Virus record (IMG/VR): IMGVR_UViG_3300037882_001770
Location: 186,001 to 250,000 of that record
Reading direction: 5' to 3' (one strand)
Length of the DNA stretch: 64,000 nt
The notes under the pieces are model-generated. The model ran no database searches. It was given only the letters and a program-made list of their open reading frames with translations, and was not told the DNA's origin. This document shows positions 2,339-50,604 of the stretch, piece by piece. Each line of letters opens with the position of its first letter. The first letter of the stretch is position 1. Made by a program: the position numbers and the translations under genes.

Positions 2339-3586
2339 ATGAAAAAAATAGGATTTATTGGGTTGGGTAAACTTGGCCTAGACTGCGCCGAAGTGTTTGC
2401 CGAACATTATGAAGTGCGCGGCTTTGATATTTACCCAAGAACCAGTGACCTGGTAAAAGTTTGTAGCATAGAAGAAACTGTCAATGAAAGTGAATGGATT
2501 TTTTTAGCAGTACCAACTCCTCACTGTGAAGGATACGATGGATCAGTTCCTAGCAGCCATATGGAACCCAAAGACTTTGGACGCGAAGCAGTATTAGCCG
2601 CAATTGACAGTATAAACAAACATGCAACCTCAAGCAAAAAAGTAGTGCTAATCAGCACAGTGTTGCCAGGTACTACTAGACATTATTTTGCTGGACGTCT
2701 TGATTCTGTACACAATTTTTTGTACAATCCTTACTTGATTGCTATGGGCAGTGTAAAGTGGGACATGGTCAATCCAGAAATGATCATGATCGGCACCGAA
2801 GATGGCAATCCCAATGCGCTTGCACAAGAGTTAATCGATCTATATACACCAATGATGAAAAATAGTCCAAGGTATGAAGTTGGTACTTGGGACGAGTGTG
2901 AAGCAATTAAAATTTTCTATAACACATTTATCAGTGCCAAAGTTGGTCTGGCCAATATGATTCAAGATTTTGCTATGAAGATTGGTAATATCAATGTGGA
3001 TGTGGTCACGGATGCATTGGCTCGTAGCACAATGCGTATTATGGGTCCCAAGTATATGACAGCTGGCATGGGCGATGCAGGTGCTTGCCATCCTAGAGAT
3101 AATATTGCTCTACGTTGGCTGGCACAAGAATATGACTTAGGGTACGACATGTTTGATACAATCATGCATGCTCGAGAAATTCAAGCACGTAATCTAGCTG
3201 AGTTTTTAGTAATACAAGCACAAAAAAATAACTTGCCAATAGTAATTCATGGCAAGGCTTATAAACCAGACGTGCCGTATTGTATTGGTAGTTATAGCAC
3301 CCTAATTGGACATTATGTTGAACAGGCAGGACACCGGGTGTCCTATGTTGATCCATTGGCCGACGACCAAACAAATGTAGTATCAAGTCTTGACACCCCG
3401 GCGGTAGTGTTGTTGGCACATAACCGACATGTAACCTATGGATATACTGGACAACCTCAACAAGACATTTTTTATTACGATATTAAGTCTGGCAGCGTTA
3501 TTGTTGATCCGTGGCGCTCAATTTCACAAGACACGAAAGGCATGACTGTTATACACTATGGAAACACACGTAATAACCAAATATAA
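2339..3586 (+). CDS. ugd: UDP-glucose/GDP-mannose dehydrogenase family protein
   Basis: Rossmann GLGKLG, AVPTP, STVLPGTT, catalytic Lys in EAIKIFYN, catalytic Cys in GACHPRD, AYKPD. Confidence 0.9.
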   Translation: MKKIGFIGLGKLGLDCAEVFAEHYEVRGFDIYPRTSDLVKVCSIEETVNESEWIFLAVPTPHCEGYDGSVPSSHMEPKDFGREAVLAAIDSINKHATSSKKVVLISTVLPGTTRHYFAGRLDSVHNFLYNPYLIAMGSVKWDMVNPEMIMIGTEDGNPNALAQELIDLYTPMMKNSPRYEVGTWDECEAIKIFYNTFISAKVGLANMIQDFAMKIGNINVDVVTDALARSTMRIMGPKYMTAGMGDAGACHPRDNIALRWLAQEYDLGYDMFDTIMHAREIQARNLAEFLVIQAQKNNLPIVIHGKAYKPDVPYCIGSYSTLIGHYVEQAGHRVSYVDPLADDQTNVVSSLDTPAVVLLAHNRHVTYGYTGQPQQDIFYYDIKSGSVIVDPWRSISQDTKGMTVIHYGNTRNNQI

Positions 3587-15000: not shown

Positions 15001-15597
15001 ATGCCAAATTTAGTACCCATTGTAGTAGAACAAACCAGCAAAGGCGAACGCAGTTACGATATATATAGTAGACTGCTGCGTGATCGTATTGTAATGCTAG
15101 ATACAGACGTAAACGAGCATACTGCCAGTTTGATAGTGGCTCAGTTGCTGTTTTTAGAAGCAGAAGATCCAGAGCGCGATATTATTTTTTACATCAACAG
15201 CCCAGGTGGCGTAGTCACGGCAGGTATGGCAATTTACGACACTATGAACTTTATTCGCCCGGATGTAAGCACAGTGGTCATGGGCCAGGCATGTAGCATG
15301 GGAAGTTGTTTAGCTCAGGCTGGCGCCGCAGGTAAACGATTTATTTTGCCAAATGCACGTCATATGATTCACCAACCTTCGGGCGGTGCCAGAGGACAAG
15401 CAACAGATATTCAGATTCAAGCACAAGAAATACTCAAAATGAAAAAATACTTAACAGAGATCTATGTCAAGCACAACACTGCTGGCAAAACCTTTGAGCA
15501 GTTGACCGCAGACATGGAACGCGACAACTTTATGAGTGCTGAAGAAGCAGTGGCCTATGGCTTGGCTGATCAGATTATAACTCGACGCGATGCCTAA
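15001..15597 (+). CDS. clpP: ATP-dependent Clp protease proteolytic subunit
   Basis: [46 protein letters not shown]. Confidence 0.97.
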
Positions 15598-16897
15598 TCA
15601 GCAGGTATTTTGCAACACCCCGTGGTATGAATTACATATCTATTGGGACGGTGGCTTTGGTATTTGTTGTCAAGAAAGCCACCGATTGTATAAAGATTCC
15701 ACACAGTACAACATTGCCAACATGAGCATTATGGAATGGTTTAATAGCCAACCTGTGCGAAAATTCAGAACAGACATACTGGGTGACAGTAAAATATCTG
15801 AGTGCCAGCGTTGTTATATTGAAGAACGACACGGCGGCAACAGTCGTAGATTAAAAAGTAATTTAAAAAGCGTTATCTTTACACGTCAGGCCTTTGATGA
15901 AAGTTTTAAACAAAGTCCAGGATATCCGATATTTTCAACCAACGACCAAACTCAAGGCTACACCACGACCCATCCGATTGATCTGCATGTTGACCTAGGA
16001 AACTACTGTAACTTGGCCTGTAAAATGTGCCATGCACAGGCCAGTAGCACAATTGCAAGCCAAGAAGTAAAATGGGGCATTGCCGAAAGCAAACAGTATC
16101 TTGGTACCGACTGGACCAGAAATCCGCAGGTATGGCAATCGTTTAAACAGCAGTTGTTGGAAATACCAAATTTAAAGAATATACACTTCATGGGCGGCGA
16201 AACTCTACTGACCAATCAATTTGAAGATCTAGTGGACTGGTTGACCGAACATCGACGATTTGAAGTGTGTTTTAGTTTTGTGACCAATGGTACAGTGTTT
16301 AAACCAACACTAATCGACAAACTTAAAAAGTTTCAGCGAGTGGGCATAGAAATCAGTATAGAATCTGTAGATGAACACAATGCTTATCAACGTCAGGGCA
16401 CCGATACTGCTCTGGTACTAGCCAACATCAAACAATATCAAACACACTGCAACAACACCAGCATCACCGTGGCATTACGTCCAGCACCTAGCGCATTGAC
16501 CATTGGCTACTATGTGGGATTATTGCAGTTTGCACTAGACAATCAGTTGGTGGTCAAAAGCAATCTGTGTTACGAGCCAAGATTCTTAAATGCAGAAATA
16601 TTACCTGACAAAACAAAATTGCTTTACCAGTCATATTATCAAGAATTTTTAACACAATTTGCCGATGTACAGGCCAATATCGATTACAATGCCAGCGACT
16701 TGAATAACTATCGATTAATCATCAAAGAACATGCAGAAATGTGCCTGGCCATATTGCAAACCCCGGAGCCCAACGATTATCAACATCAAATTGAATGTCT
16801 GGTCAATCACTGTAGAAAATGGGATGATATTTACGGATACGATGCACGAGTATTATATCCTGAATTAACTGAAATATTGGATCTTTATGGCTATTGA
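15590..16897 (+). CDS. radical SAM protein with N-terminal SPASM/Twitch-like domain
   Basis: [16 protein letters not shown]; N-terminal C..PW...CC...C..C. Confidence 0.9.
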
Positions 16898-18394: not shown

Positions 18395-18501
18395 AAACAA
18401 CACTCTAAACCCCGTTTTAGCGGGGTTTTTTGTGGGTTGTCCAAACGGTTGACCCAAAATGATACCTGCGCTATAATGTATGTATAGTGAAAATAAAGGA
18501 G
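18385..18501 (+). promoter_or_regulatory. palindrome + terminator + early promoter + RBS module
   Basis: TGTGG-N8-CAACA, hairpin AAACCCCG/CGGGGTTT, TTGACC 18449-N17-TATAAT 18472, AAGGAG. Confidence 0.85.
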
Positions 18502-24161: not shown

Positions 24162-24187
24162 AAACCCCGTGCAATGCGGGGTTTTTT
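24162..24187 (+). terminator. intrinsic terminator
   Basis: AAACCCCG-tgcaatg-CGGGGTTTTTT. Confidence 0.85.
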
Positions 24188-24262
24188 CTTGACTAAAATA
24201 CCGTTTGACCAATAAATCCATTTCAAGTATAATAATAGTATATTAATAAGTAAGGATGTGCC

Positions 24263-24775: not shown

Positions 24776-25152
24776 TGGAACTTTCAGATATTGTTGTAAA
24801 CATTTTAATTGGTATCGGCATTGGATTTGGTATGATTGTTGCGTATGCCTGGTATCTGTATCGAGGTCTAAAGGCCCGTGTGGATCAAATGATTGCAGAA
24901 GTCATTGCCGAAGCCGAAGCCAGCATGGTTGGCCTCGACATCGAAGTTGACAATGGTGTGTATTTTTGCTATAATAGCAAAGATAAACAGTTTGTTTGTC
25001 AAGGATCCACAGTAGAAGAAATTCGCGAAGGATTCCGTCGACAATTTCCGAACAAGACAGCATACTTGGCTGGAGGAGATCCGGCAGTGATGGAACAAAT
25101 TAAAATAGAATTATTAAAGATAGCACCCAATGAAAATAGCCCTAGCGTCTGA
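24775..25152 (+). CDS. membrane-anchored hypothetical protein
   Basis: N-terminal TM helix; YFCY...KQFVCQG.T.EE. Confidence 0.7.
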   Translation: MELSDIVVNILIGIGIGFGMIVAYAWYLYRGLKARVDQMIAEVIAEAEASMVGLDIEVDNGVYFCYNSKDKQFVCQGSTVEEIREGFRRQFPNKTAYLAGGDPAVMEQIKIELLKIAPNENSPSV

Positions 25153-26053
25153 CATACATTTAGAATTTGGACCCATTGTCTTAGACAATACCCAATCGGC
25201 TGAAGTGTTGATCTTGGCTGGCGACATCTGTGTGGCACAGCATTTTGCTGATCGTAATCCCACCTATGTCAAACACCTGGCCGGTGAGTATCGAGATTTC
25301 TTTGATCATGTGACCCAGCAATTTCCGCATGTGATCTATATCTTGGGCAATCACGAACACTACTCGGGTGATGTGGCTCACAGCTACAATATTCTTAAAC
25401 ACCACTTAAATTATCCCAATCTGCACATTCTTGAAAAAGAAACCTGGGTACATCAAGGCTATACCTTCGTCGGCGGAACTCTTTGGACTGACATGGACAG
25501 TGAAAACGCTGTGGCCATGAGCTATGCACGCTCGGCCATGACCGACTTTCGCGAAATACTCAACAGCAACAGAATGGTGGTGCGTAATGTGCCCATTTAT
25601 GAACGCAACCCGCTCTGGACCGAAGACGGCAAAAATGGTGGGCAGTATGTTAAAAATGAAGACGGATCATTGATTCGTACCGGTTATAAAAGCCGTGAGG
25701 AGCCAGCTAGATGGACACCAGAAGATTCAGTTGCGGATCACAAACGGATGCTGGACTACATTGACTTGGTTACTCGTGCGCCCGGACAATATGTTGTGGT
25801 AGGTCACCACTGCCCGAGTGAGTCGAGTGTAGCTGAGTGTTATAAGGGTAATCTGCTGAATGCGGCATTTCGTAGTCGCCTGGATGACTTTATTGAGCAA
25901 CGCCCACAGATTCAACTTTGGTTGCATGGACACACCCATTTTAATTTCAATTATTGGATTGGTGAAACTCGGGTGGTGTGCAATCCCAGAGGCTATGTGG
26001 GTCATGAATCAATTGCCAACTTTTTCCAATTGCAGTATATAGATCTAGCTTGA
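25130..26053 (+). CDS. calcineurin-like metallophosphoesterase
   Basis: SDIHLE, LAGDI, GNHEHY, TLWTD, HHCP, HGHTH, CNPRGY. Confidence 0.92.
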   Translation: MKIALASDIHLEFGPIVLDNTQSAEVLILAGDICVAQHFADRNPTYVKHLAGEYRDFFDHVTQQFPHVIYILGNHEHYSGDVAHSYNILKHHLNYPNLHILEKETWVHQGYTFVGGTLWTDMDSENAVAMSYARSAMTDFREILNSNRMVVRNVPIYERNPLWTEDGKNGGQYVKNEDGSLIRTGYKSREEPARWTPEDSVADHKRMLDYIDLVTRAPGQYVVVGHHCPSESSVAECYKGNLLNAAFRSRLDDFIEQRPQIQLWLHGHTHFNFNYWIGETRVVCNPRGYVGHESIANFFQLQYIDLA

Positions 26054-26084
26054 CCTGTAATGGGCAATCCTGTATAATGTTACT

Positions 26085-26282
26085 ATGACTACAGAACAAG
26101 AATTCCGCGCCATTGCCGATCAACTGGTCACCAGCTTAGTTGGAAAGAACATGGTTGATGCCTGGTGGGCCAGCCCCAATCGGGCCTTTGATGACCGCAC
26201 ACCCGAAGCACAGTGGGCCCAAGGGTCGGATCAGGTAGTCAATTATCTAATGCATTATGCATTCGCCGGGGGAGGCAGTTAA
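26085..26282 (+). CDS. stand-alone Xre/MbcA/ParS antitoxin C-terminal-like protein
   Basis: G.....AWW.SPN.AFD..TP.......G...V..YL; own promoter TTGACC 26050 / TATAAT 26073. Confidence 0.6.
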   Translation: MTTEQEFRAIADQLVTSLVGKNMVDAWWASPNRAFDDRTPEAQWAQGSDQVVNYLMHYAFAGGGS

Positions 26283-26506
26283 TGAACGAGCGGATTCGAC
26301 AACTTGCTGAACAGGCTACCACTTACATTGAGCTAGTACCGGGACATAGTGGTGAAGGGTGGATCTTTGACAAAGAAAAGTTCGCCCAGTTGATTGTGGA
26401 AGAATGTGCTCGTGCTTGCTTGGCTGCTACTGAACCAGGTTCCTCTGTGCATCTAGTATCAGTGGCCTATGCTGACGCAGTCCGAGGACATTTTGGAGTT
26501 GAATGA
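26282..26506 (+). CDS. MNERI-family small protein, copy 1
   Basis: MNERIRQLAEQ..EKFAQLIVEECA..HFGVE. Confidence 0.8.
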   Translation: MNERIRQLAEQATTYIELVPGHSGEGWIFDKEKFAQLIVEECARACLAATEPGSSVHLVSVAYADAVRGHFGVE

Positions 26507-26931
26507 TGAGAGCAAGTAATCCAATCGAAACCTTGTCCCATTGTATGGCGCATGCTGTATATGAAGGGTTTCCTGAATTTGAGTACCAAGACCGTGATTG
26601 GTCGCAAGGTTATCAACCAGGAGTTGAACCAACATATATCACGAAGAAACGCAAACACATTGCGTATGATGTGACTGTATATGCCATGTTTCCACAAACG
26701 TGGGGTTCTACCGCATTGGGCTTTGGTGGTCTTGGTGGACAAGCAATCACTGATGCATACACTGTGGTATTAGAATCTCACCAAGGTGGAGGATATTGCG
26801 TATACTTTGGTGGTCGTTTTGCATATAGAATTAAACGACCATATGGCAAATTTTGGGATGATATTCAGACACAAAGTTTGAATGGTGTTGCTGGTGCCAA
26901 GAAAATGTATGAAAGTGCAGTTGAAGAATGA
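26503..26931 (+). CDS. conserved hypothetical phage protein
   Basis: FPQTWGSTALGFGG.GGQA.T.AYT...VYFGGRFAY. Confidence 0.8.
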   Translation: MMRASNPIETLSHCMAHAVYEGFPEFEYQDRDWSQGYQPGVEPTYITKKRKHIAYDVTVYAMFPQTWGSTALGFGGLGGQAITDAYTVVLESHQGGGYCVYFGGRFAYRIKRPYGKFWDDIQTQSLNGVAGAKKMYESAVEE

Positions 26932-27134
26932 AAAAATCTTACACTCTTGTCTCTAACTCTAAGGCAAAGAAGCCTTATGTTATTGGGCATTATGCCACGA
27001 TGAAGGATGCTGAAAACGCACTTGAACTCTATGAGCGTAAACGTGCCAACTCACTGGAACTACAGCGTAAGTATCCAGGACAGGGTATAGAAGAGTTATA
27101 CTGTGATTTGAAAATTATCGGAGTTGAAGAATGA
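26928..27134 (+). CDS. hypothetical protein
   Basis: ATGA-coupled, ends GVEE. Confidence 0.7.
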   Translation: MKKSYTLVSNSKAKKPYVIGHYATMKDAENALELYERKRANSLELQRKYPGQGIEELYCDLKIIGVEE

Positions 27135-27310
27135 ACTTTGGCTACATAATCGACCGGTTGCCCATCACCGTTGTGACTCTGATGTTGCTATCCGTTCCAT
27201 TTTTTGTTTACGATTTTTTACAAGCAGACAAAGCGTGTACTCAAGCAGGCGGGGTGTTGGTTAAATCCGCAGGCGGATGGATTTGTATTCGAGCGGAGGC
27301 AAAACAATGA
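27131..27310 (+). CDS. 59-aa membrane protein with Cys pair (not in ORF track)
   Basis: MNFGYIIDRLP-TM-...CTQAGGVLVK..GGWICI; ATGA coupling at both ends. Confidence 0.7.
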   Translation: MNFGYIIDRLPITVVTLMLLSVPFFVYDFLQADKACTQAGGVLVKSAGGWICIRAEAKQ

Positions 27311-27519
27311 ACGAGCGGATTCGACAACTTGCTGAACAATGTCGTTGGCAAGAAACTGTCACGGAAGATGGTGAAGAATGGATCCACGCACACTTTGATG
27401 AAGCCAAGTTCGCCCAGTTGATTGTTCAGGAATGTGCTGGCCTTGTAGATCATGTGCGTATGGAAGATGGAACAAACAGAGGCGATTTTATTCGCAAACA
27501 TTTTGGAGTTGAACAATGA
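27307..27519 (+). CDS. MNERI-family small protein, copy 2
   Basis: MNERIRQLAEQ..AKFAQLIVQECA..KHFGVEQ. Confidence 0.8.
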   Translation: MNERIRQLAEQCRWQETVTEDGEEWIHAHFDEAKFAQLIVQECAGLVDHVRMEDGTNRGDFIRKHFGVEQ

Positions 27520-27887
27520 GTGAATACACACCAGACCGTTGGCTTGTTATACGAATTACCACACCCACGGAACAACTTTATAAAGTGTTTGCGGCCTGGT
27601 CCGGCGGCTACACAGGATCAGATTCATGGAAGATGAATTCGGGCATTGTGCGTGCTACCTGGGCGGATCCTTACTGGGAGTTTGATGGGTCATCTGGATC
27701 AGTATATCAGTGTCACTGGGATGGGTATGGCACCAATGGCTATGGTGGAGCGGTCTTGGACAACCTGATCAGTCAGGCTCAAGCTCAAGGCATTCAGATT
27801 GAAGTCATGGATGGAGAAACTGACTGGGCACAACTACAGTATGATCCCTTGGCACAGTGGGTAGAGTCAGGAGCAAACAATGCTTAA
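27516..27887 (+). CDS. conserved hypothetical phage protein
   Basis: YTPDRW...YKVFA.W.GGY.GSDSWK.NSGI...F.GSSGSVY.C. Confidence 0.8.
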   Translation: MSEYTPDRWLVIRITTPTEQLYKVFAAWSGGYTGSDSWKMNSGIVRATWADPYWEFDGSSGSVYQCHWDGYGTNGYGGAVLDNLISQAQAQGIQIEVMDGETDWAQLQYDPLAQWVESGANNA

Positions 27888-28065
27888 ATGGTTGCGTTAT
27901 AGTGGTGCCAGTCTGGTAATAACAGTTAATCCACTACACTGGCGTTGGGTTCCACAAGCAGGACAGGTATTTACAACCGAGTGGGCCACGCCCAATGAAC
28001 AGACCTGGCAGGCAAGTTGGTTATTTTTGACTGTGAGAATTTGGATCGATGACGGGAGTTGGTAA
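27880..28065 (+). CDS. hypothetical protein
   Basis: AGGAG RBS; Trp-rich 61 aa. Confidence 0.7.
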   Translation: MLKWLRYSGASLVITVNPLHWRWVPQAGQVFTTEWATPNEQTWQASWLFLTVRIWIDDGSW

Positions 28066-28268
28066 TGGCAGAAATAGCACTGAATCGCAGACAGTTGGAA
28101 AAACTGTTTGAAATAACCCGGCACTTTCACGAGGTGGAATGGTTTACTGTGGAGACTGATGACACCAGCGGCATTGGCACCGGAATTGTGGTCAAGTTCA
28201 ACGCATTTGGCGACACGGATAAAGACACCGACACTACTGTGAACATAACTGATGTGAGTACTTGGTAA
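28065..28268 (+). CDS. hypothetical protein
   Basis: SGIG...ITDVSTW; TAATG coupling. Confidence 0.7.
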   Translation: MAEIALNRRQLEKLFEITRHFHEVEWFTVETDDTSGIGTGIVVKFNAFGDTDKDTDTTVNITDVSTW

Positions 28269-28492
28269 TGAAGATTGAATCTGCAGACGGACAAGAAGGC
28301 ATACTAATCTGGTGTGGCGGCGACCGCTATGTGTTTAGAGTCTACACTGCACCACCAGAAGAATTTGTGGATTATGACATCTGCCACACAGACATGCGTG
28401 TGGTAATTCGAGATTTTGATGCATATTTTTACACAGATGACAATGGAGCCCGTGTGGATCATAGTCCTGTTACCTTAGGGATTAATCTGTAA
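28268..28492 (+). CDS. hypothetical protein
   Basis: YVFRVY...F.DYDI.H.D...DHSP.TLG. Confidence 0.7.
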   Translation: MKIESADGQEGILIWCGGDRYVFRVYTAPPEEFVDYDICHTDMRVVIRDFDAYFYTDDNGARVDHSPVTLGINL

Positions 28493-28869
28493 TGGGCATG
28501 TTTGATCATGTTCTCTACCAAGGTCGTGAGTATCAGACCAAGGATACACCTGAGCAGATGTTGGACAATTATAAAATTGAACAGGATGCAGAATCGGGTG
28601 AGTGGCATCTGTGGCATGAAGAATACGACGCTGAATGGATTCAGGATGATGGCCAACTGTTTGGTGGCAGCATCAAGCAGAGCAATCATCGTTGGGTGCT
28701 CTGTACAGACTTTGATGGTGAAATACGTTTTTACTATTATCGTAGCCATGAGGATCAGGAAGAATACCGAGCCCTGTTTATGGACGGACGCATGTTAAAA
28801 ATACGTTTGACCAGTGAACCACTCACTGACTGGTTGGTCAAGGGCATGGAAGAACGAGGAATTAAATGA
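28492..28869 (+). CDS. hypothetical protein
   Basis: MGMFD...YQTKD...F.GEIRFY...EY.A.F.DG. Confidence 0.75.
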   Translation: MGMFDHVLYQGREYQTKDTPEQMLDNYKIEQDAESGEWHLWHEEYDAEWIQDDGQLFGGSIKQSNHRWVLCTDFDGEIRFYYYRSHEDQEEYRALFMDGRMLKIRLTSEPLTDWLVKGMEERGIK

Positions 28870-29063
28870 AACAGTGGATTGGTCGTGTGGTCAGCGAAGT
28901 GCTATTTTATCTAGGACATTGGATACATTTTCCAATGATTTGGTTTGATTGGGCTTGGATGCATCGCCCCTACAGTTATTTAATGACCTGGAGTCATGAC
29001 GTGCAAGTCTGGGCCGGAACCGACGGCCCCTGGGGTCCTGATACAACAAAGGATGTAGAATGA
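28866..29063 (+). CDS. hypothetical protein
   Basis: ATGA coupling. Confidence 0.65.
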   Translation: MKQWIGRVVSEVLFYLGHWIHFPMIWFDWAWMHRPYSYLMTWSHDVQVWAGTDGPWGPDTTKDVE

Positions 29064-29272
29064 AGTGGTTACACGTGCGACGCCAAGAAGGCGAATGGTT
29101 AAACTATGGATTAACCTTTTATCCGCTATCCGACAAGCATAGCATTGGGTTTATGTTTAGAACCGAAGAGCGATATTTTAGACTACGCTACAGCAAAAAG
29201 GTTAGGAAATGGTTTTGGCAATATGTGCGTCTAGAACCAAAAGCATGGCGTATATTGAAAGGTGAAGAATGA
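29060..29272 (+). CDS. hypothetical protein
   Basis: ATGA coupling, ends GEE. Confidence 0.65.
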   Translation: MKWLHVRRQEGEWLNYGLTFYPLSDKHSIGFMFRTEERYFRLRYSKKVRKWFWQYVRLEPKAWRILKGEE

Positions 29273-29499
29273 ACACTCGAATACAAAAACTAATGGATCG
29301 AAGCTTTACCGACGAACAGGGTGAACGATTCGATCCCGAACGATTTGCCAAATTGATTGTGCAGGAATGTGCTATTTTTGGTATGGTCATAACCGATGAT
29401 CACTTTGATGTCGATGCTTTATACAAGCATTTTGGCATGGACAACAATCCGTTACCAGGTCGGTCTACCTATCCTGGCCCACAATGTTCGCCCCCATAA
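29269..29499 (+). CDS. MNERI-family small protein, copy 3 (diverged)
   Basis: MNTRIQKL..ERFAKLIVQECA..KHFG. Confidence 0.75.
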   Translation: MNTRIQKLMDRSFTDEQGERFDPERFAKLIVQECAIFGMVITDDHFDVDALYKHFGMDNNPLPGRSTYPGPQCSPP

Positions 29500-29514
29500 T
29501 CCAAGGAAAATAAA

Positions 29515-29619
29515 ATGGAAATTACTCAACTCACTCTAGGCATTGTAACCTTCACTGTAGCTATTGTTACTCTGCTTGTTATTATTATTTTTAGCCGTTG
29601 GCCCAACCGAAAGGACTGA
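29515..29619 (+). CDS. 34-aa single-pass membrane peptide (not in ORF track)
   Basis: AAGGA RBS; MEITQLTLGIVTFTVAIVTLLVIIIFSRWPNRKD. Confidence 0.55.
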   Translation: MEITQLTLGIVTFTVAIVTLLVIIIFSRWPNRKD

Positions 29620-29620
29620 C

Positions 29621-30007
29621 ATGTTTACTATATTCAAATTCTTCTGGTCATTGTCCCAGTCATCATGGGATATCATGAATCCTAATCATAATCCTCTGCG
29701 TCTTGCTCCGCCACACATCAAATACTTTGCCTCAATCTTGTTAGGTTGTTTTTGGAGTCTGGCATTTGGTATCTATGCTGGTGAACTCTACTATATCGGC
29801 TACAACATGTTTGGACACATTGCTGTCATCAGCATGGTGTTTGTGACCTGGCTAGTGTTCGCTCAGTTTAAGAAAACATATGGATCTGGTTCATATCCAC
29901 TTATGCGTGCTCCAGATCGCTCCAGTCGCTGTGATGAACTCACTGACGAACAGCGACAACAAGCTGTTGCTCGTGCTGATCAACTGCTGTTGACAAATAA
30001 AAATTAA
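29621..30007 (+). CDS. membrane protein
   Basis: AAGGA RBS before ATG 29621; MNP..NPL..P and two TM helices. Confidence 0.7.
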   Translation: MFTIFKFFWSLSQSSWDIMNPNHNPLRLAPPHIKYFASILLGCFWSLAFGIYAGELYYIGYNMFGHIAVISMVFVTWLVFAQFKKTYGSGSYPLMRAPDRSSRCDELTDEQRQQAVARADQLLLTNKN

Positions 30008-30024
30008 TTCTTAAGGAAAACAAA

Positions 30025-30498
30025 ATGTTTAGAAAATTTAACAACATGCGTAATTATTGGAACAGCCTGCCAGATCTGGCTTTGGCTCACTTCTTACTGA
30101 GAATCCCCCTGGCCGTGGTGTTCATCACACAAGGCATCAGCAAGTTGCCGTTTGATCCAACAGGTGGTGAAGCATTTGGACTCATACCCCTGGTCTGGTG
30201 GGTGGTAGTCTACGGTGAAATTGCAGCCGGTATTGGTTTGTTAGTAGGCGGCCTGGCCACCCTGCCCAGAATACAGGACATACCCCTGGTGGCCGAACTG
30301 GGCGACATGCTTACTCGATTCTGCGGTATCACCATGTGCTGTGTGGTCACAGGTGTGATCTGGGTAGTGAGCAAGCCCGAAAGTCTTTGGGCATTTGTGC
30401 TGTATGATAACCTGCACTTGTTTTTATGGGTAGGTGGTCTTTATTTTGCTCTAAGAGGCAACTGGGCTGTGGCTGTGAAAAAGACACTGGGCAGTTGA
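30025..30498 (+). CDS. DoxX family membrane protein
   Basis: LLRIPLA.VFI.QG.SK; V.YGEI.AGIGLL.G; LTR. Confidence 0.75.
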   Translation: MFRKFNNMRNYWNSLPDLALAHFLLRIPLAVVFITQGISKLPFDPTGGEAFGLIPLVWWVVVYGEIAAGIGLLVGGLATLPRIQDIPLVAELGDMLTRFCGITMCCVVTGVIWVVSKPESLWAFVLYDNLHLFLWVGGLYFALRGNWAVAVKKTLGS

Positions 30499-30550
30499 CC
30501 ACTATATTGTAAAGTGTTATAATGTTGCATAATCAAAGGATCCGCCCTAC

Positions 30551-31276
30551 ATGAAAATCTATAAATCTTGCTACAGAAATCATTGGATTTCTCCCTACAC
30601 CATCATTGACTATGTGTTCTTTTGGACTGACTGGAGCCGGTGTAGTCGTAACAGCACTTTACAAACAGCTATCGACGAGGCCGAAGGCAAATACAAGTAC
30701 ATAGAACATCCTGAGTGGGTGGACCGCTGGGCTGATCGATTGAGTCCCATCAGCCGTGCCCTACAGTGGTTTTTAGATCTTGTTCACCCGCAGATCAAGT
30801 ATGTGAAAATTGATCCATGGGATACCTGGAGCATGGATCATACCTTAGCCGACATTATCCTGCCCATGCTGAAACAGTTGCAGGCAACCAAGCATGGTAG
30901 CCCCAACACCGATGACGAGGACGTGCCCGAATACCTACGCAGTCACATGGCACAGCCCAAAGAAAACGAGTGGGATACCGACAGCCTACACCATATGCGT
31001 TGGGACTGGATCTTGGCCGAAATGATCTTTGCCTTTGAGAAAAAAGCACAGGATGACTGGCAAGCTGAGTTCCACTCGGGCAAGATTGACTGGGTCCATG
31101 TGCCGGTAGATGCCAAAGGTAACGAAGTACCCAAAGGCGAACACCGTTTTTACCAAATGAAAGACGGTCCCAACCATACTCATGTGTATGATGCCGAAGG
31201 TGCCCAACGGGTGCAAGAACGCATCTCAAACGGCTTCCGCCTGTTTGGCAAATACTATGAAAATCTCTGGGACTAA
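30551..31276 (+). CDS. conserved hypothetical phage protein
   Basis: D.WDTWSMD.TLA.II.PML.QL...KHG.P; RWDW.L.EMI.AF; GF.LFGKYY..LWD; promoter 30495/30518. Confidence 0.85.
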   Translation: MKIYKSCYRNHWISPYTIIDYVFFWTDWSRCSRNSTLQTAIDEAEGKYKYIEHPEWVDRWADRLSPISRALQWFLDLVHPQIKYVKIDPWDTWSMDHTLADIILPMLKQLQATKHGSPNTDDEDVPEYLRSHMAQPKENEWDTDSLHHMRWDWILAEMIFAFEKKAQDDWQAEFHSGKIDWVHVPVDAKGNEVPKGEHRFYQMKDGPNHTHVYDAEGAQRVQERISNGFRLFGKYYENLWD

Positions 31277-31277
31277 C

Positions 31278-31457
31278 ATGGATATCATAGTGGTTCCAGG
31301 CAACAACAAGAGTCATGATAGATTCAATGATCAATTTGCCTGGTGTGAAAAAACCTTTGGCCAGTTTAGAGATCAGTGGAACTACGATATTGTAAAAGAT
31401 GTCTACGGGTTTCGTTACGAATCAGATGCAGTTTTGTTCAAGTTAAAATGGGAGTAA
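31278..31457 (+). CDS. small protein, F-x-F-xxx-D-A-xx-F-x-L-x-W family
   Basis: WC..TFG.....W...YGFRYESDAVLFKLKW. Confidence 0.7.
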   Translation: MDIIVVPGNNKSHDRFNDQFAWCEKTFGQFRDQWNYDIVKDVYGFRYESDAVLFKLKWE

Positions 31458-34115: not shown

Positions 34116-34519
34116 ATACTAATTTTTATTTTGCTTACGGTGCCAATATGCATCCAGGACATATGCAATTTCGTTGCCCAGCGGCTCAAGCGGTAGGCGC
34201 ATTCACATTGAGAAAGTGGGAACTTAAATTTTATAGTCATGCTACAATTGAACCTAATCCTCAAGCTACGGTTGCTGGGGTTTTATGGAAAATCACCAAC
34301 GACTGCGAGTCAAGCCTTGATATGTTTGAGGGATACCCCAGTTATTATACCAAACGTACTTGGATACAAGACGAAACTCAGTTTTTCTTTTATGAGATGA
34401 CCGCACCTAAGTCGGGTAGGCCCAGTGAAGGTTATGTGCTAGACATTGCAGAAAGTTATAAGTTCTGGCAATTACCTCAAAATTTATTAATTGAATCTTT
34501 GCATGACACTATTGCGTAG
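34112..34519 (+). CDS. gamma-glutamylcyclotransferase (AIG2-like)
   Basis: YFAYGANM....M..RCP.A; V.GVLW; LD.FEG.P..Y; PS..Y. Confidence 0.85.
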   Translation: MNTNFYFAYGANMHPGHMQFRCPAAQAVGAFTLRKWELKFYSHATIEPNPQATVAGVLWKITNDCESSLDMFEGYPSYYTKRTWIQDETQFFFYEMTAPKSGRPSEGYVLDIAESYKFWQLPQNLLIESLHDTIA

Positions 34520-34766
34520 AGAAACAGGACCATTATTAAAAAGTCCCATGGACTACATGCGTGATAAGGACAGTTTTCGTCATGCACAAGAAATTGCCAA
34601 ACCGTTTGGTGTGCTAGAACAGGTATTAGATTGGTGCAAAGAAGAACTAGTTGGCGAATGGCGCTGGCAGTTAATTGAAGTTAGTAGCGATCGTAAACCA
34701 GGCCGTTATTGTTTTTTCTTTGATTCGGAACGCGATTGCCTGGCATTTACAATGAAATGGTCTTAG
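34503..34766 (+). CDS. small protein, F-x-F-xxx-D-A-xx-F-x-L-x-W family
   Basis: WCKEEL.GEWRW...YCFFFDSERDCLAFTMKW. Confidence 0.7.
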   Translation: MTLLRRETGPLLKSPMDYMRDKDSFRHAQEIAKPFGVLEQVLDWCKEELVGEWRWQLIEVSSDRKPGRYCFFFDSERDCLAFTMKWS

Positions 34767-49470: not shown

Positions 49471-50604
49471 ATGAGTTCTTGGTATTGTGCTTTACCTTTT
49501 AAACATGTGTTTGTGGACAGTACAGGACTTAGTCCTTGTTGCAATACCGTCGGACAATTTGGGCTTGACGTCAGTATAGACGAATACAAATCACATCCTA
49601 AGTTACTAGAATTACAAAAACAATTTCTTGATGGGCGCACTCCTGCTGCATGCTCTGTTTGCTTGCACCAAGAAAAAATTCAAAACAAAAGTATGAGAAT
49701 AGACAGTAATATTGACTACAATCATCGGGTGTTTGATTCTACCGAGTTTGATTTTATACACCTTAGTCAAAGTAACTTGTGTAATTTCAAATGCCGCAGT
49801 TGTAGTCCAAGATACAGCCACGGAATAGTTCAAGAACACAAAAAATATCCCGAATTGTTTGCGGACGCACCTCAACAAAAATTCGTCGAAGTCAATCCTG
49901 ACAATTATAAATGGATTATTAAAAATTTATCAAGTATTAAAAGACTTTTAATAACCGGCGGAGAGCCCACAGTAATGCCAGAAATAAGACATTTGTTTGA
50001 ATTTTTGTTGCAAACACCGCGGCCGCAACCACAACCGTATATTATGATGACAACCAATTGTAGCTGGACTGATAATTTTTGGTATCAAGCAATTGACGGT
50101 ATGTCTAATTTGCATATCACAGCTAGTGTAGATGCAGTAGGAGATGCTGCGCAACTAATAAGACACGGTACTGTTTGGAATCAGGTAGAGCGCAACGTGA
50201 AGTGGTTAGCCCAGCATGCCTCGAGTTTTGATATCAATACGGTAATTAGCAATTTAAATATAAACCATCTTTATGATTTACTTCAATTCTGCAGACAAGA
50301 ACAAATAGCCTCCAAAGTAGAAAATGGAGGGAAACAGGGAGATTTGGGACTACGGCATCAATTTACTATAGCTAACGGTGTCAATGAGATTACCTGTTTT
50401 CCGGATGATCTAAAAACAAAAACACTAAAACATTTGGATCAGTGCCTTGCATTGGATCTAGATCCAGACCAACTGAAATTGATCAAGGGGTTAATTGTAA
50501 CTGTTCAAAATAGTACATACAATCATCAAAAATGGCAAAGTATTGTAGAATATCAAACCAAACTTGATCAAATTCGTGGTGAAAACCATTTGAAACTACT
50601 CTAA
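49471..50604 (+). CDS. radical SAM protein with N-terminal Twitch-like domain
   Basis: C.LPF..PCC..C..C; CNFKCRSC; TGGEP; TN. Confidence 0.9.
   Translation: MSSWYCALPFKHVFVDSTGLSPCCNTVGQFGLDVSIDEYKSHPKLLELQKQFLDGRTPAACSVCLHQEKIQNKSMRIDSNIDYNHRVFDSTEFDFIHLSQSNLCNFKCRSCSPRYSHGIVQEHKKYPELFADAPQQKFVEVNPDNYKWIIKNLSSIKRLLITGGEPTVMPEIRHLFEFLLQTPRPQPQPYIMMTTNCSWTDNFWYQAIDGMSNLHITASVDAVGDAAQLIRHGTVWNQVERNVKWLAQHASSFDINTVISNLNINHLYDLLQFCRQEQIASKVENGGKQGDLGLRHQFTIANGVNEITCFPDDLKTKTLKHLDQCLALDLDPDQLKLIKGLIVTVQNSTYNHQKWQSIVEYQTKLDQIRGENHLKLL

Follow-up and report, generated by a model that had tools for sequence, protein, structure and literature searches.

A recombining small-gene array built around an undescribed protein family in an uncultured freshwater jumbo phage

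Gene content of the array

The window is a 64,000-nucleotide stretch (positions 186,001 to 250,000) of IMG/VR record IMGVR_UViG_3300037882_001770, a 317-kb jumbo-phage record that is 89% complete and of the Rak2/GAP32/Atu_ph07 type. Within its hyperplastic region lies a promoter-to-promoter early operon (26050-30523), all features of which are on the plus strand. The array is headed by a sigma-70-like early promoter (TTGACC-17-TATAAT; 26050-26078), which is conserved in L004, the locus of a close relative; there are 11 such sites in the window against 0.06 expected. A second sigma-70-like promoter (30495-30523) marks the right end of the array. Promoters occur only at the array ends, and one terminator-plus-promoter pair lies outside the array, at 24162-24233.

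The array is organized around three paralogous genes encoding small acidic proteins that begin with MNERI, which we use to name the family. These genes, MNERI-1 (26282-26506; 74 aa), MNERI-2 (27307-27519; 70 aa), and MNERI-3 (29269-29499; 76 aa), have pairwise BLASTP E-values of 1e-14, 9e-10, and 5e-8 and match the family HMM with E-values of 4e-43, 5e-22, and 9e-16. The N anchor (26282-26317, 27307-27342, and 29269-29304) encodes M-N-E-R-I-x-x-L-A-E-Q-A and has the DNA form ATGAACGAACGAATT...CTTGCTGAACAGGCT; MNERI-3 has the MNTRIQKLMDRS variant, which is also seen in P0032 and P0049. The central anchor (26375-26407, 27403-27435, and 29338-29370) encodes F-A-x-L-I-V-x-E-C, with invariant F, A, L, I, and C columns in the family alignment, and has the DNA form AAGTTCGCCGAGTTGATTGTNCGGGAATGT. 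The T anchor or joint, CATTTYGGAGTTGAAGAATGA, is found at 26480-26506 in MNERI-1 and at 27490-27519 in MNERI-2 and holds the last codons (HFGVEE), a GGAG ribosome-binding site, the stop codon, and the ATG of the next gene. In MNERI-3 the T anchor is cut after CATTTTGG (29428-29435), so that the protein keeps only K-H-F-G before a 19-aa foreign tail. Between the anchors lie two hypervariable windows, V1 (between the N and central anchors) and V2 (between the central and T anchors), each an unalignable stretch of varying length. The AF2 model of MNERI-1 (pLDDT 88.9) predicts a helix, a hairpin, and two helices.

The remaining genes of the array show no pairwise similarity (E > 0.1), and most are referred to here as cargo. 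The first array gene (26085-26282; 65 aa) is of unknown function and has an 83% identical homolog in L004. MNERI-1, which has a 91% ortholog in L004, overlaps the start of a 142-aa gene (26503-26931) at a first joint (CATTTTGGAGTTGAA-TGATG; 26488-26510). The 142-aa gene ends in AVEE, and a second joint (AGTTGAAGAATGAA; 26919-26932) connects it to a 68-aa gene (26928-27134), which ends in GVEE and has no homolog in any fetched locus. A third joint (GGAGTTGAAGAATGAA; 27120-27135) leads to a 59-aa gene (27131-27310) with 94% nucleotide identity to L004. MNERI-2 is followed by a 123-aa gene (27516-27887), which in the window and in 3 of its 8 homolog loci sits directly behind an MNERI T anchor.

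Next come a 61-aa gene ending in DDGSW (27880-28065) and a 67-aa gene ending in DVSTW (28065-28268), which end in a second joint type: GGGAGTTGGTAATG at 28048-28067, and a second copy of the TGGTAATG joint at 28251-28270. In relatives, the next cassette at the first of these positions is the 67-aa gene, an MNERI gene, or the 74-aa gene. The 74-aa gene (28268-28492) is found in 7 loci and lies behind an intact MNERI T anchor in one (L044) and a degenerate one in another (L071). It is followed by a 125-aa gene (28492-28869) and a 65-aa gene ending in KDVE (28866-29063). The joint at 29051-29064 (GGATGTAGAATGAA) precedes a 70-aa gene ending in GEE (29060-29272), and the joint at 29260-29273 (AGGTGAAGAATGAA), which shares AGAATGAA with the former, precedes MNERI-3. 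In another locus, L026, an 81% homolog of the 70-aa gene lies about 15 kb away in another array behind a different joint. Three small genes (34, 128, and 157 aa; 29515-30498), hydrophobic and possibly membrane-associated judging from their sequences only, complete the array.

The repeats noted in the sequence-only reading are real. The 33-nt block at 26281/27306 is 100% identical, although the genes themselves start one base later than these repeat coordinates, at 26282 and 27307. A 46-nt family at 26365/27393/29328 contains a 20-nt identical run at 26378/27406, and the block at 26488/27498 has 16 identical bases. AGTTGAAGAATGAA occurs at 26919 and 27122 (100%), 29260 (93%), and 27507 (86%). 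GTTGAAGAATGA with at most 1 mismatch occurs 5 times in the window against 0.49 expected, a count reached in 0 of 100 shuffles, and four of the five occurrences lie inside the 3-kb array. Among 121 plus-strand ATGA stop/start overlaps in the whole 317-kb genome, this upstream sequence occurs only here. The 33-nt identity is unusual even for this family, as only 0.3-0.5% of MNERI gene pairs share an identical N-anchor run of 30 nt or more; the two copies also share rare codons (GAG at E3, 7% in the family; CGG at R4, 4%) that the ortholog in L004 lacks.

The MNERI family and its portable joint

The MNERI family comprises at least 8,175 clusters at 50% identity in metagenomes, usually with several copies per locus, and has no Pfam, PHROG, or PDB match. 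The sequence-only reading treated the junction as a shared ending of unrelated genes; we find that it is not a free-standing element but the native 3' end (GGAGTTGAAGAATGA; HFGVEE-stop/ATG) of MNERI genes, grafted onto other genes, and that the phenomenon is family-wide in many phages rather than local to this genome. Of the 120 best homologs, 63 end in GVEE or FGVE. The joint occurs 239 times in 1.27 Mb of loci; 152 of these end MNERI genes, followed by a non-MNERI gene in 86 cases and by another MNERI gene in 52. About 37 ORFs outside the MNERI HMM set end in the joint. A few of these are MNERI genes missed for lack of an ATG start, while the rest, some 30 clearly unrelated ORFs, carry tails of graded length (GVEE, FGVEE, HFGVEE, IKEHFGVEE). 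At least 14 exact joints have almost no ORF upstream. Cargo families change their C-tail with context and often sit right behind a T anchor in unrelated contigs; for example, homologs of the 142-aa gene in 12 loci have other C-tails (such as RSSVA and RTN), and in two loci (L079 and L080) the gene again directly follows an MNERI T anchor.

Across 274 genes from 84 loci, the three anchors use position-specific synonymous codons far from background: CGA 85% against 14%, AAG 87/35, TTC 76/30, GCC 83/25, GAG 85/24, TTG 85/27, GGA 93/23, and GTT 92/35. The same codon is used for the same amino acid in 0.66-0.80 of cases in anchors against 0.45 in the variable windows. The loci were retrieved with a pattern on the central protein motif, which inflates its amino-acid conservation but should not inflate codon choice, and some loci are near-duplicates (L038/L039, L054/L055). 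Part of the codon fixation in the N and T anchors can be explained by translation-initiation constraints, namely the GGAG site, an A-rich unstructured start region, and the ATGA overlap.

Breakpoints and re-assortment among relatives

Gene order is not fixed among relatives. Between the conserved phosphoesterase gene (25130-26053) and a 241-aa gene (30551-31276), the window has 17 genes, L004 has 11, and more distant loci (L005 to L007 and L110 to L115) have 3 to 7 in different combinations. In these, single cassettes are swapped at the same joints between conserved flanks; the 67-aa gene, for example, is absent in L006 and replaced by an MNERI gene in L110. The array is 86-94% identical to L004 at the nucleotide level while the flanks are 63-81%, with identity rising from 77% at about the first promoter, consistent with recent exchange.

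All four gene-content differences from L004 break at the joints, at MNERI anchors, or at one promoter (GGAGTTGAA; ATGAACGA and AAACATTTTGGAGTTGAAC; AGAATGAA; CATTTTGG plus the promoter -35 box). The 142-aa and 68-aa genes are together absent from L004, with the left breakpoint at 26488-26510 and the right breakpoint at 27120-27135, a joint identical to the one that ends MNERI-1 in L004. The body of MNERI-2 between its N and T anchors is replaced by a different allele in L004. The 70-aa gene is absent from L004, with breakpoints at 29051-29064 and 29260-29273. Finally, the three hydrophobic genes, also absent from L004, are inserted between the broken T anchor of MNERI-3 and the next promoter, at the -35 box of which (CAGTTGAC) the right breakpoint lies. 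One of the indels is flanked by only 8 nt of identity.

The two variable windows re-assort independently. We identified 46 gene pairs from different contigs that share V1 (89% nucleotide identity) with V2 unalignable, and 24 pairs that show the reverse; identity of the flanking anchors follows the shared half. One V1 type pairs with 65 V2 clusters, and one V2 type with 18 V1 clusters. Identical runs of 20 nt or more occur in 16-22% of all gene pairs at the central anchor and in 9% at the T anchor. However, random MNERI pairs share only about 70-76% anchor identity, and within-locus pairs are no more alike than between-locus pairs, so there is no general local homogenization. In Logan contigs from four metagenomes, depth piles up on the anchors and matches start and stop exactly at anchor edges; there is a contig joint 28067>28307 in one run, although contig joints at 88% likeness can come from other organisms.

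Possible mechanisms and related systems

These observations support, at the level of pattern, the proposal in the sequence-only reading that short homologies let genes be swapped while keeping translational coupling and that MNERI proteins diversify in two windows between constant anchors. That reading saw no recombinase in the array; elsewhere in the genome, UvsX-like recombinase and gp32-like SSB genes lie at G000:123055-124972. We favor, with moderate confidence, a model in which the same short blocks recur in many genes of many co-occurring phages, and general recombination, using the phage's own UvsX/gp32-type machinery during co-infection, or short-homology deletion and insertion, crosses over inside them. 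This would re-assort V1 and V2, replace whole MNERI alleles, and insert or delete unrelated cargo genes precisely between joints, an inserted gene inheriting the MNERI tail while the downstream gene stays translationally coupled. That the homology causes the crossovers rather than surviving them, that UvsX is responsible, and that the proteins are early host-directed binders or inhibitors are inferences; no recombination intermediate or circle was observed, with only assembled contigs to examine, and selection for intact, coupled genes would by itself enrich surviving breakpoints at gene boundaries.

A less likely possibility is that illegitimate recombination happens everywhere and only products that keep reading frames and translational coupling survive, the anchors being conserved because they encode the structural core of the protein and an optimal translation-initiation region. 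The anchors indeed map to the three helices of the AF2 model, the joint contains GGAG at ideal spacing and is unstructured, and both the 8-nt indel and the lack of homogenization within loci speak for this alternative. However, it does not explain the position-specific synonymous codons of the central anchor, which lies far from any start, why unrelated genes carry MNERI tails of graded length, or why exact 15-nt joints persist with no ORF upstream; in addition, half-gene sharing switches exactly at the central anchor.

More speculatively, and doubtfully on present evidence, MNERI arrays could be a phage-borne, homology-guided platform for gene capture and protein diversification. The anchors would then be kept at the DNA level because cassettes with consensus anchors spread by recombination, possibly stimulated by an associated GIY-YIG nuclease that recognizes TTCG..GAGTTGA. 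The result would be a community-wide combinatorial library of a three-helix scaffold with two exchangeable binding surfaces, plus a universal adaptor joint that plugs any small gene into a translationally coupled early operon, in effect an integron analogue that needs no site-specific recombinase.

It is unlikely that exchange is instead driven by a free-standing homing-type endonuclease (GIY-YIG or HNH) that cuts at an anchor sequence, with repair from a co-infecting genome co-converting the neighboring variable windows and cargo. A GIY-YIG gene of about 105 aa with its own promoter is the commonest neighbor of MNERI arrays (14 of 82 loci), G000 has three GIY-YIG genes, L004 carries an HNH gene next to the array, and the central and T anchors share TTCG..GAGTTGA. 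However, 83% of loci have no such gene within 5 kb, none lies in the array of the window, GAGTTGA is not enriched genome-wide, and no cleavage data exist.

An ordinary compact operon, with a convergent ribosome-binding site plus ATGA overlap and simple tandem duplicates that diverged, is very unlikely: although ATGA and TAATG overlaps are common in the genome, the motif is enriched about ten-fold, mostly within the array, and is the MNERI 3' end in hundreds of genes, and chimeric halves, allele replacement, and variable gene content among relatives contradict it. Assembly chimeras at shared repeats are less likely still; all the data are assemblies and the anchors are repeats, but identical runs are mostly 10-20 nt, shorter than assembler k-mers, shared halves are about 89% rather than 100% identical, and the window and L004 are independent assemblies, collinear apart from clean indels. 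A diversity-generating retroelement or other targeted hypermutation, suggested only by two hypervariable windows in a constant frame, can be all but dismissed, as the reverse transcriptase pfam PF00078 is absent from the 317-kb, 89% complete record and the windows differ in length and are unalignable rather than point-mutated.

The array resembles the promoter-early stem-loop (PeSL) cassettes of T4-type phages (Arbiol et al. 2010, PMC2839356; Comeau et al. 2014, PMC4122927) in that short repeated motifs flank non-essential small ORFs in hyperplastic early regions, that insertions, deletions, and replacements between close relatives break at the motifs, and that both occur in a phage with UvsX-type recombination. 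The array is itself bounded by strong sigma-70-like promoters. PeSLs, however, are intergenic promoter-plus-terminator units for which mini-circles were shown, while here the repeated unit lies inside coding sequence, has no stem-loop (mean z +0.41 and an empty consensus fold), keeps genes translationally fused, and derives from a paralogous gene family. The gp38 adhesins of T-even phages (Trojet et al. 2011, PMC3157838) likewise combine a conserved structural core, encoded by short conserved blocks (glycine-rich motifs in gp38), with independently exchangeable hypervariable segments. There is no sequence or fold relationship between the two, and MNERI is not a virion adhesin so far as can be told; it is multi-copy in tandem arrays and early-promoter driven, with two windows rather than four.

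Like integron gene cassettes, the array is promoter-driven and composed of small, unrelated, individually gained and lost ORFs with a repeated boundary element, but its boundaries are coding sequence, there is no attC-like folded site and there are no inverted repeats at the junctions, and exchange is most simply explained by general recombination. No IntI tyrosine recombinase was seen next to the array, where ten of the small genes and the 241-aa gene have no Pfam match and the left flanking gene is a phosphoesterase, although the rest of the genome was not scanned for integrases. Finally, in the C-terminal displacement of Rhs and polymorphic toxins (e.g. PMC2935791), which are large bacterial toxins with immunity genes and have no relation to MNERI in sequence, size, or context, a conserved block similarly serves as the crossover point at which variable ends are displaced.

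Context of the array and identity of the joint

The 317,493-bp IMG/VR virus record (G000), which is 89% complete, encodes a UvsX-like recombinase next to a gp32-like SSB gene. The recombinase is 62–68% identical to those of the Rak2/GAP32/CBB/Atu_ph07/Phosso group of jumbo myoviruses; the phage therefore has T4-style recombination machinery. GC content is 42.7% and the window has no tRNA. The window carries 11 near-consensus TTGACC-N16-18-TATAAT promoter-like sites, at 18449, 24205, 26050, 30495, 32844(-), 34768, 43522, 43859, 44121, 59250(-), and 63059, against 0.06 expected, and this part of the genome looks like a host-RNA-polymerase early region. The small-gene array lies between the sites at 26050 and 30495 and has no convincing internal terminator, and fourteen genes from 26085 to 29499 abut or overlap without any spacer.

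Every repeat listed in a sequence-only reading of this locus is present. The three MNERI genes (26282–26506, 27307–27519, and 29269–29499) are true paralogs, while no other pair of array genes is detectably similar. The 12-mer GTTGAAGAATGA with at most 1 mismatch occurs 5 times in the window against 0.49 expected, with four of the five in the array, and among all ATGA stop/start overlaps of the genome this upstream sequence is unique to the array.

MNERI-1 has more than 1,000 homologs in a set of 5.8 billion proteins, a profile search finds at least 8,175 clusters at 50% identity, and the back-translated central motif hits at least 399 IMG/VR contigs of 5 to 374 kb. In 84 loci that we retrieved, an HMM finds 274 genes, usually 2 to 13 per 10 kb and often head-to-tail, with the joint CATTTYGGAGTTGAAGAATGAAC, which reads HFGVEE-stop overlapping M-N. 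Of the 120 best homologs, 63 end GVEE or FGVE. So the junction that the sequence-only reading described at the ends of unrelated genes is the native 3' end of MNERI genes, comprising the last codons, a GGAG Shine-Dalgarno site 7 nt before the ATG, and an ATGA stop/start overlap.

Searches of Pfam and PHROGs gave nothing significant for the MNERI genes or for seven of the small unrelated (cargo) genes, although several others, including the 65-, 70-, and 125-aa genes, were only partly scanned or not scanned. PDB searches by sequence profile and by fold, as well as a search of the ESM Atlas, returned no informative match, only uncharacterized viral proteins. The GenBank phage collection contains no DNA match to the region and no tblastn match to an MNERI protein, and five cultured jumbo relatives chosen by UvsX similarity lack the family, in a search that included a positive control. 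A fourth, distant MNERI-like gene (HMM E = 6e-7), in which only the N and central anchors match, lies outside the window at G000:7772–7960. Antisense ORFs across the central anchor (26333–26452 (-) and 27241–27531 (-) in the window) recur in 27 loci and form the second-largest 'family' when the neighbors of MNERI arrays are clustered, but this is a by-product of nucleotide conservation and not a gene.

Breakpoints, grafted tails, and variable windows

L004, an independent NCBI metagenome-assembled contig from a close relative, is collinear with the window except for four differences. First, the 142-aa and 68-aa genes are absent; the deletion or insertion lies between two GGAGTTGAA copies, and the L004 joint equals the window's joint at 27120. 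Second, the body of MNERI-2 is replaced by another allele, with homology stopping 14 nt into the gene and resuming at AAACATTTTGGAGTTGAAC. Third, the 70-aa gene is absent, between two AGAATGAA copies. Fourth, three hydrophobic small genes (34, 128, and 157 aa) are absent; the left break falls inside the T anchor of MNERI-3, after CATTTTGG, and the right break falls at the -35 box of the 30495 promoter. In this part of the window (29428–30515), MNERI-3 has lost its normal HFGVEE end and reads into a 19-residue foreign tail, and the three hydrophobic genes follow.

More distant relatives keep the flanks, namely the phosphoesterase gene and the 241-aa gene, and between them hold 3 to 7 cassettes in other combinations. 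At the TGGTAATG joints, MNERI genes, the 67-aa gene, or the 74-aa gene replace one another. Array genes are 86–94% identical to L004 at the nucleotide level, while the flanking conserved genes are only 63–81% identical; the promoter-bounded array (26054–30523) therefore seems to have been exchanged as a block more recently than its surroundings.

The 15-nt joint (at most 2 mismatches, ATGA kept) occurs 239 times in 1.27 Mb of loci. Of these copies, 152 end MNERI genes, 86 of which are followed by a non-MNERI gene and 52 by another MNERI gene. About 37 copies end ORFs outside the MNERI HMM set, and at least 14 exact copies have fewer than 35 open codons upstream. A few of the 37 are MNERI genes missed for want of an ATG start, but the rest, some 30 clearly unrelated ORFs, carry tails of graded length: GVEE, FGVEE, HFGVEE, and IKEHFGVEE. 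This is what variable crossover points inside the T anchor would leave, whereas a fixed functional tag would not produce this gradient. Moreover, cargo families change their last residues with context; for the 142-aa family these are AVEE-stop, RTN-stop overlapping an MNERI start, or RSSVA-stop. The 142-, 123-, 74-, and 70-aa families each sit immediately behind a T anchor in one or more unrelated contigs.

The family alignment shows an N anchor, a first variable window (V1), a central anchor (FAxLIVxEC), a second variable window (V2), and a T anchor. The AF2 model (pLDDT 88.9) places the anchors in three helices, V1 in a beta-hairpin, and V2 in the helix-loop between helices 2 and 3. Among 384 genes there are 207 V1 clusters and 250 V2 clusters; one V1 type pairs with 65 V2 clusters, and one V2 type pairs with 18 V1 clusters. 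At the DNA level, 46 gene pairs from different contigs share V1 (89% identity) with V2 at the random-alignment baseline, and another 24 pairs show the reverse. In V1-sharing pairs the N, central, and T anchors are 0.85, 0.86, and 0.72 identical, and in V2-sharing pairs they are 0.78, 0.84, and 0.88 identical. Linkage therefore breaks at the central anchor.

Anchor codons are position-specific and far from background, and the preferred codon differs between positions: for example, lysine is AAG at position 33 but AAA at position 68, and glutamate is GAG at position 36 but GAA elsewhere. The same codon is used for the same amino acid in 0.66–0.80 of cases in anchors, against 0.45 in the variable windows, and the figures are the same within and between loci. 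The joint region is less structured than shuffled sequence, and RNAalifold gives no consensus fold, so RNA structure is not the reason. Translation-initiation constraints can explain part of the N and T anchors, but not the central anchor.

Identical runs of 20 nt or more link 16–22% of all gene pairs at the central anchor and 9% at the T anchor. As within-locus pairs equal between-locus pairs, local concerted evolution is rejected as a general explanation. However, the N anchors of MNERI-1 and MNERI-2 in the window do look converted: the two genes share a 33-nt identical run that includes two rare codons absent from the L004 ortholog, consistent with a local conversion or copying event. The central and T anchors (window 26378–26397 and 26494–26503, and the family consensus) also share TTCG(0–2 nt)GAGTTGA in different reading frames, but the heptamer GAGTTGA is not enriched genome-wide (26 copies against 23 expected) and was rejected as a genome-wide Chi-like signal.

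Logan contigs of four freshwater, wastewater, and unspecified ('metagenome') runs cover the anchors 10 to 100 times more deeply than their surroundings. Matches begin or end exactly at 26281/2, 26317, 27118/20, 27400/6, 27439, 27497, and 27519, and contig joints connect the N anchor to the central or T anchor, and 27519 to 30563. As these are contigs at 88% likeness, they show that the blocks are shared, but not events in this particular phage.

Possible mechanisms of cassette exchange

The simplest account of these observations, which we hold with moderate confidence, is general recombination, or short-homology recombination, at portable coding blocks in a phage that encodes UvsX. The data do not show that the homology is causal, and the main alternative, which we consider less likely, is that it is not: selection for intact coupled genes would also favor boundary breakpoints, and random anchor pairs are only about 70–76% identical. 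A nuclease-stimulated variant is also possible but less likely still. No dedicated recombinase and no conserved partner gene was found beside MNERI arrays beyond a GIY-YIG-domain gene of about 105 aa, which is their commonest neighbor but is present in only 14 of 82 loci (17%). Each of these genes has its own TATAAT box, and in 13 of the 14 loci it lies 0.2–2.7 kb from MNERI genes on the same strand. There is no attC-like structure, and a diversity-generating retroelement was rejected because the record, 89% complete, has no reverse transcriptase.

The principle has precedents in T4-type phages, namely the PeSL (promoter-early stem-loop) cassettes (PMC2839356, PMC4122927) and the conserved motifs of gp38 (PMC3157838). 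A boundary element embedded in coding sequence, its derivation from a paralog family, its transplantation onto unrelated genes, and the size of the family appear undescribed; literature searches found nothing specific. If the anchors prove to be selected for recombination, this would extend the PeSL idea from regulatory DNA to coding sequence and would give a design rule for plug-in gene cassettes in phage engineering. Why phage mosaic boundaries fall at gene borders is a long-standing question, with one view invoking short conserved 'linker' homology and the other random joining followed by selection. This locus offers an unusually clean and abundant natural test set, with thousands of tiny genes with three defined crossover blocks, a coding joint that is demonstrably transplanted onto unrelated genes, and relatives that differ by single cassettes.

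The MNERI proteins are completely uncharacterized. They are small and acidic (median net charge -5), early-promoter driven, found only in viruses, hyperdiverse, and hyper-mosaic, which is the profile expected of host-takeover or anti-defense factors in freshwater phages. It is possible that they are host-directed binders or inhibitors, but this is inference only.

Related features of the genome

A second array, of about 15 small genes that all end ..F.LRW(A)-stop, is found outside the window at G000:600–6500 (L107:598–6428 in the numbering of the retrieved locus), near the fourth MNERI-like gene, and also at 31182–31457 and 34503–34766 in the window. Its array-specific joint is GTTGAGGTGGGCATGA, in which the last codons spell a GAGGTG Shine-Dalgarno site. 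Members resemble one another only in the C-terminal 16–49 residues and have no Pfam or PHROG match. In a relative (L026), an 81% homolog of the window's 70-aa gene sits in such an array, about 15 kb away and behind an array-specific joint different from that of the gene in the window.

At 24162–24233 in the window, a terminator stem-loop is followed directly by a consensus promoter, forming a PeSL-like pair. In L004 (7178–7822) a free-standing HNH_3 endonuclease gene is inserted exactly between them. The window also contains a UDP-glucose/GDP-mannose dehydrogenase-like gene and two radical-SAM genes, one with a SPASM domain (2339–3586, 15590–16897, and 49471–50604), which are possible auxiliary or modification genes of the jumbo phage.
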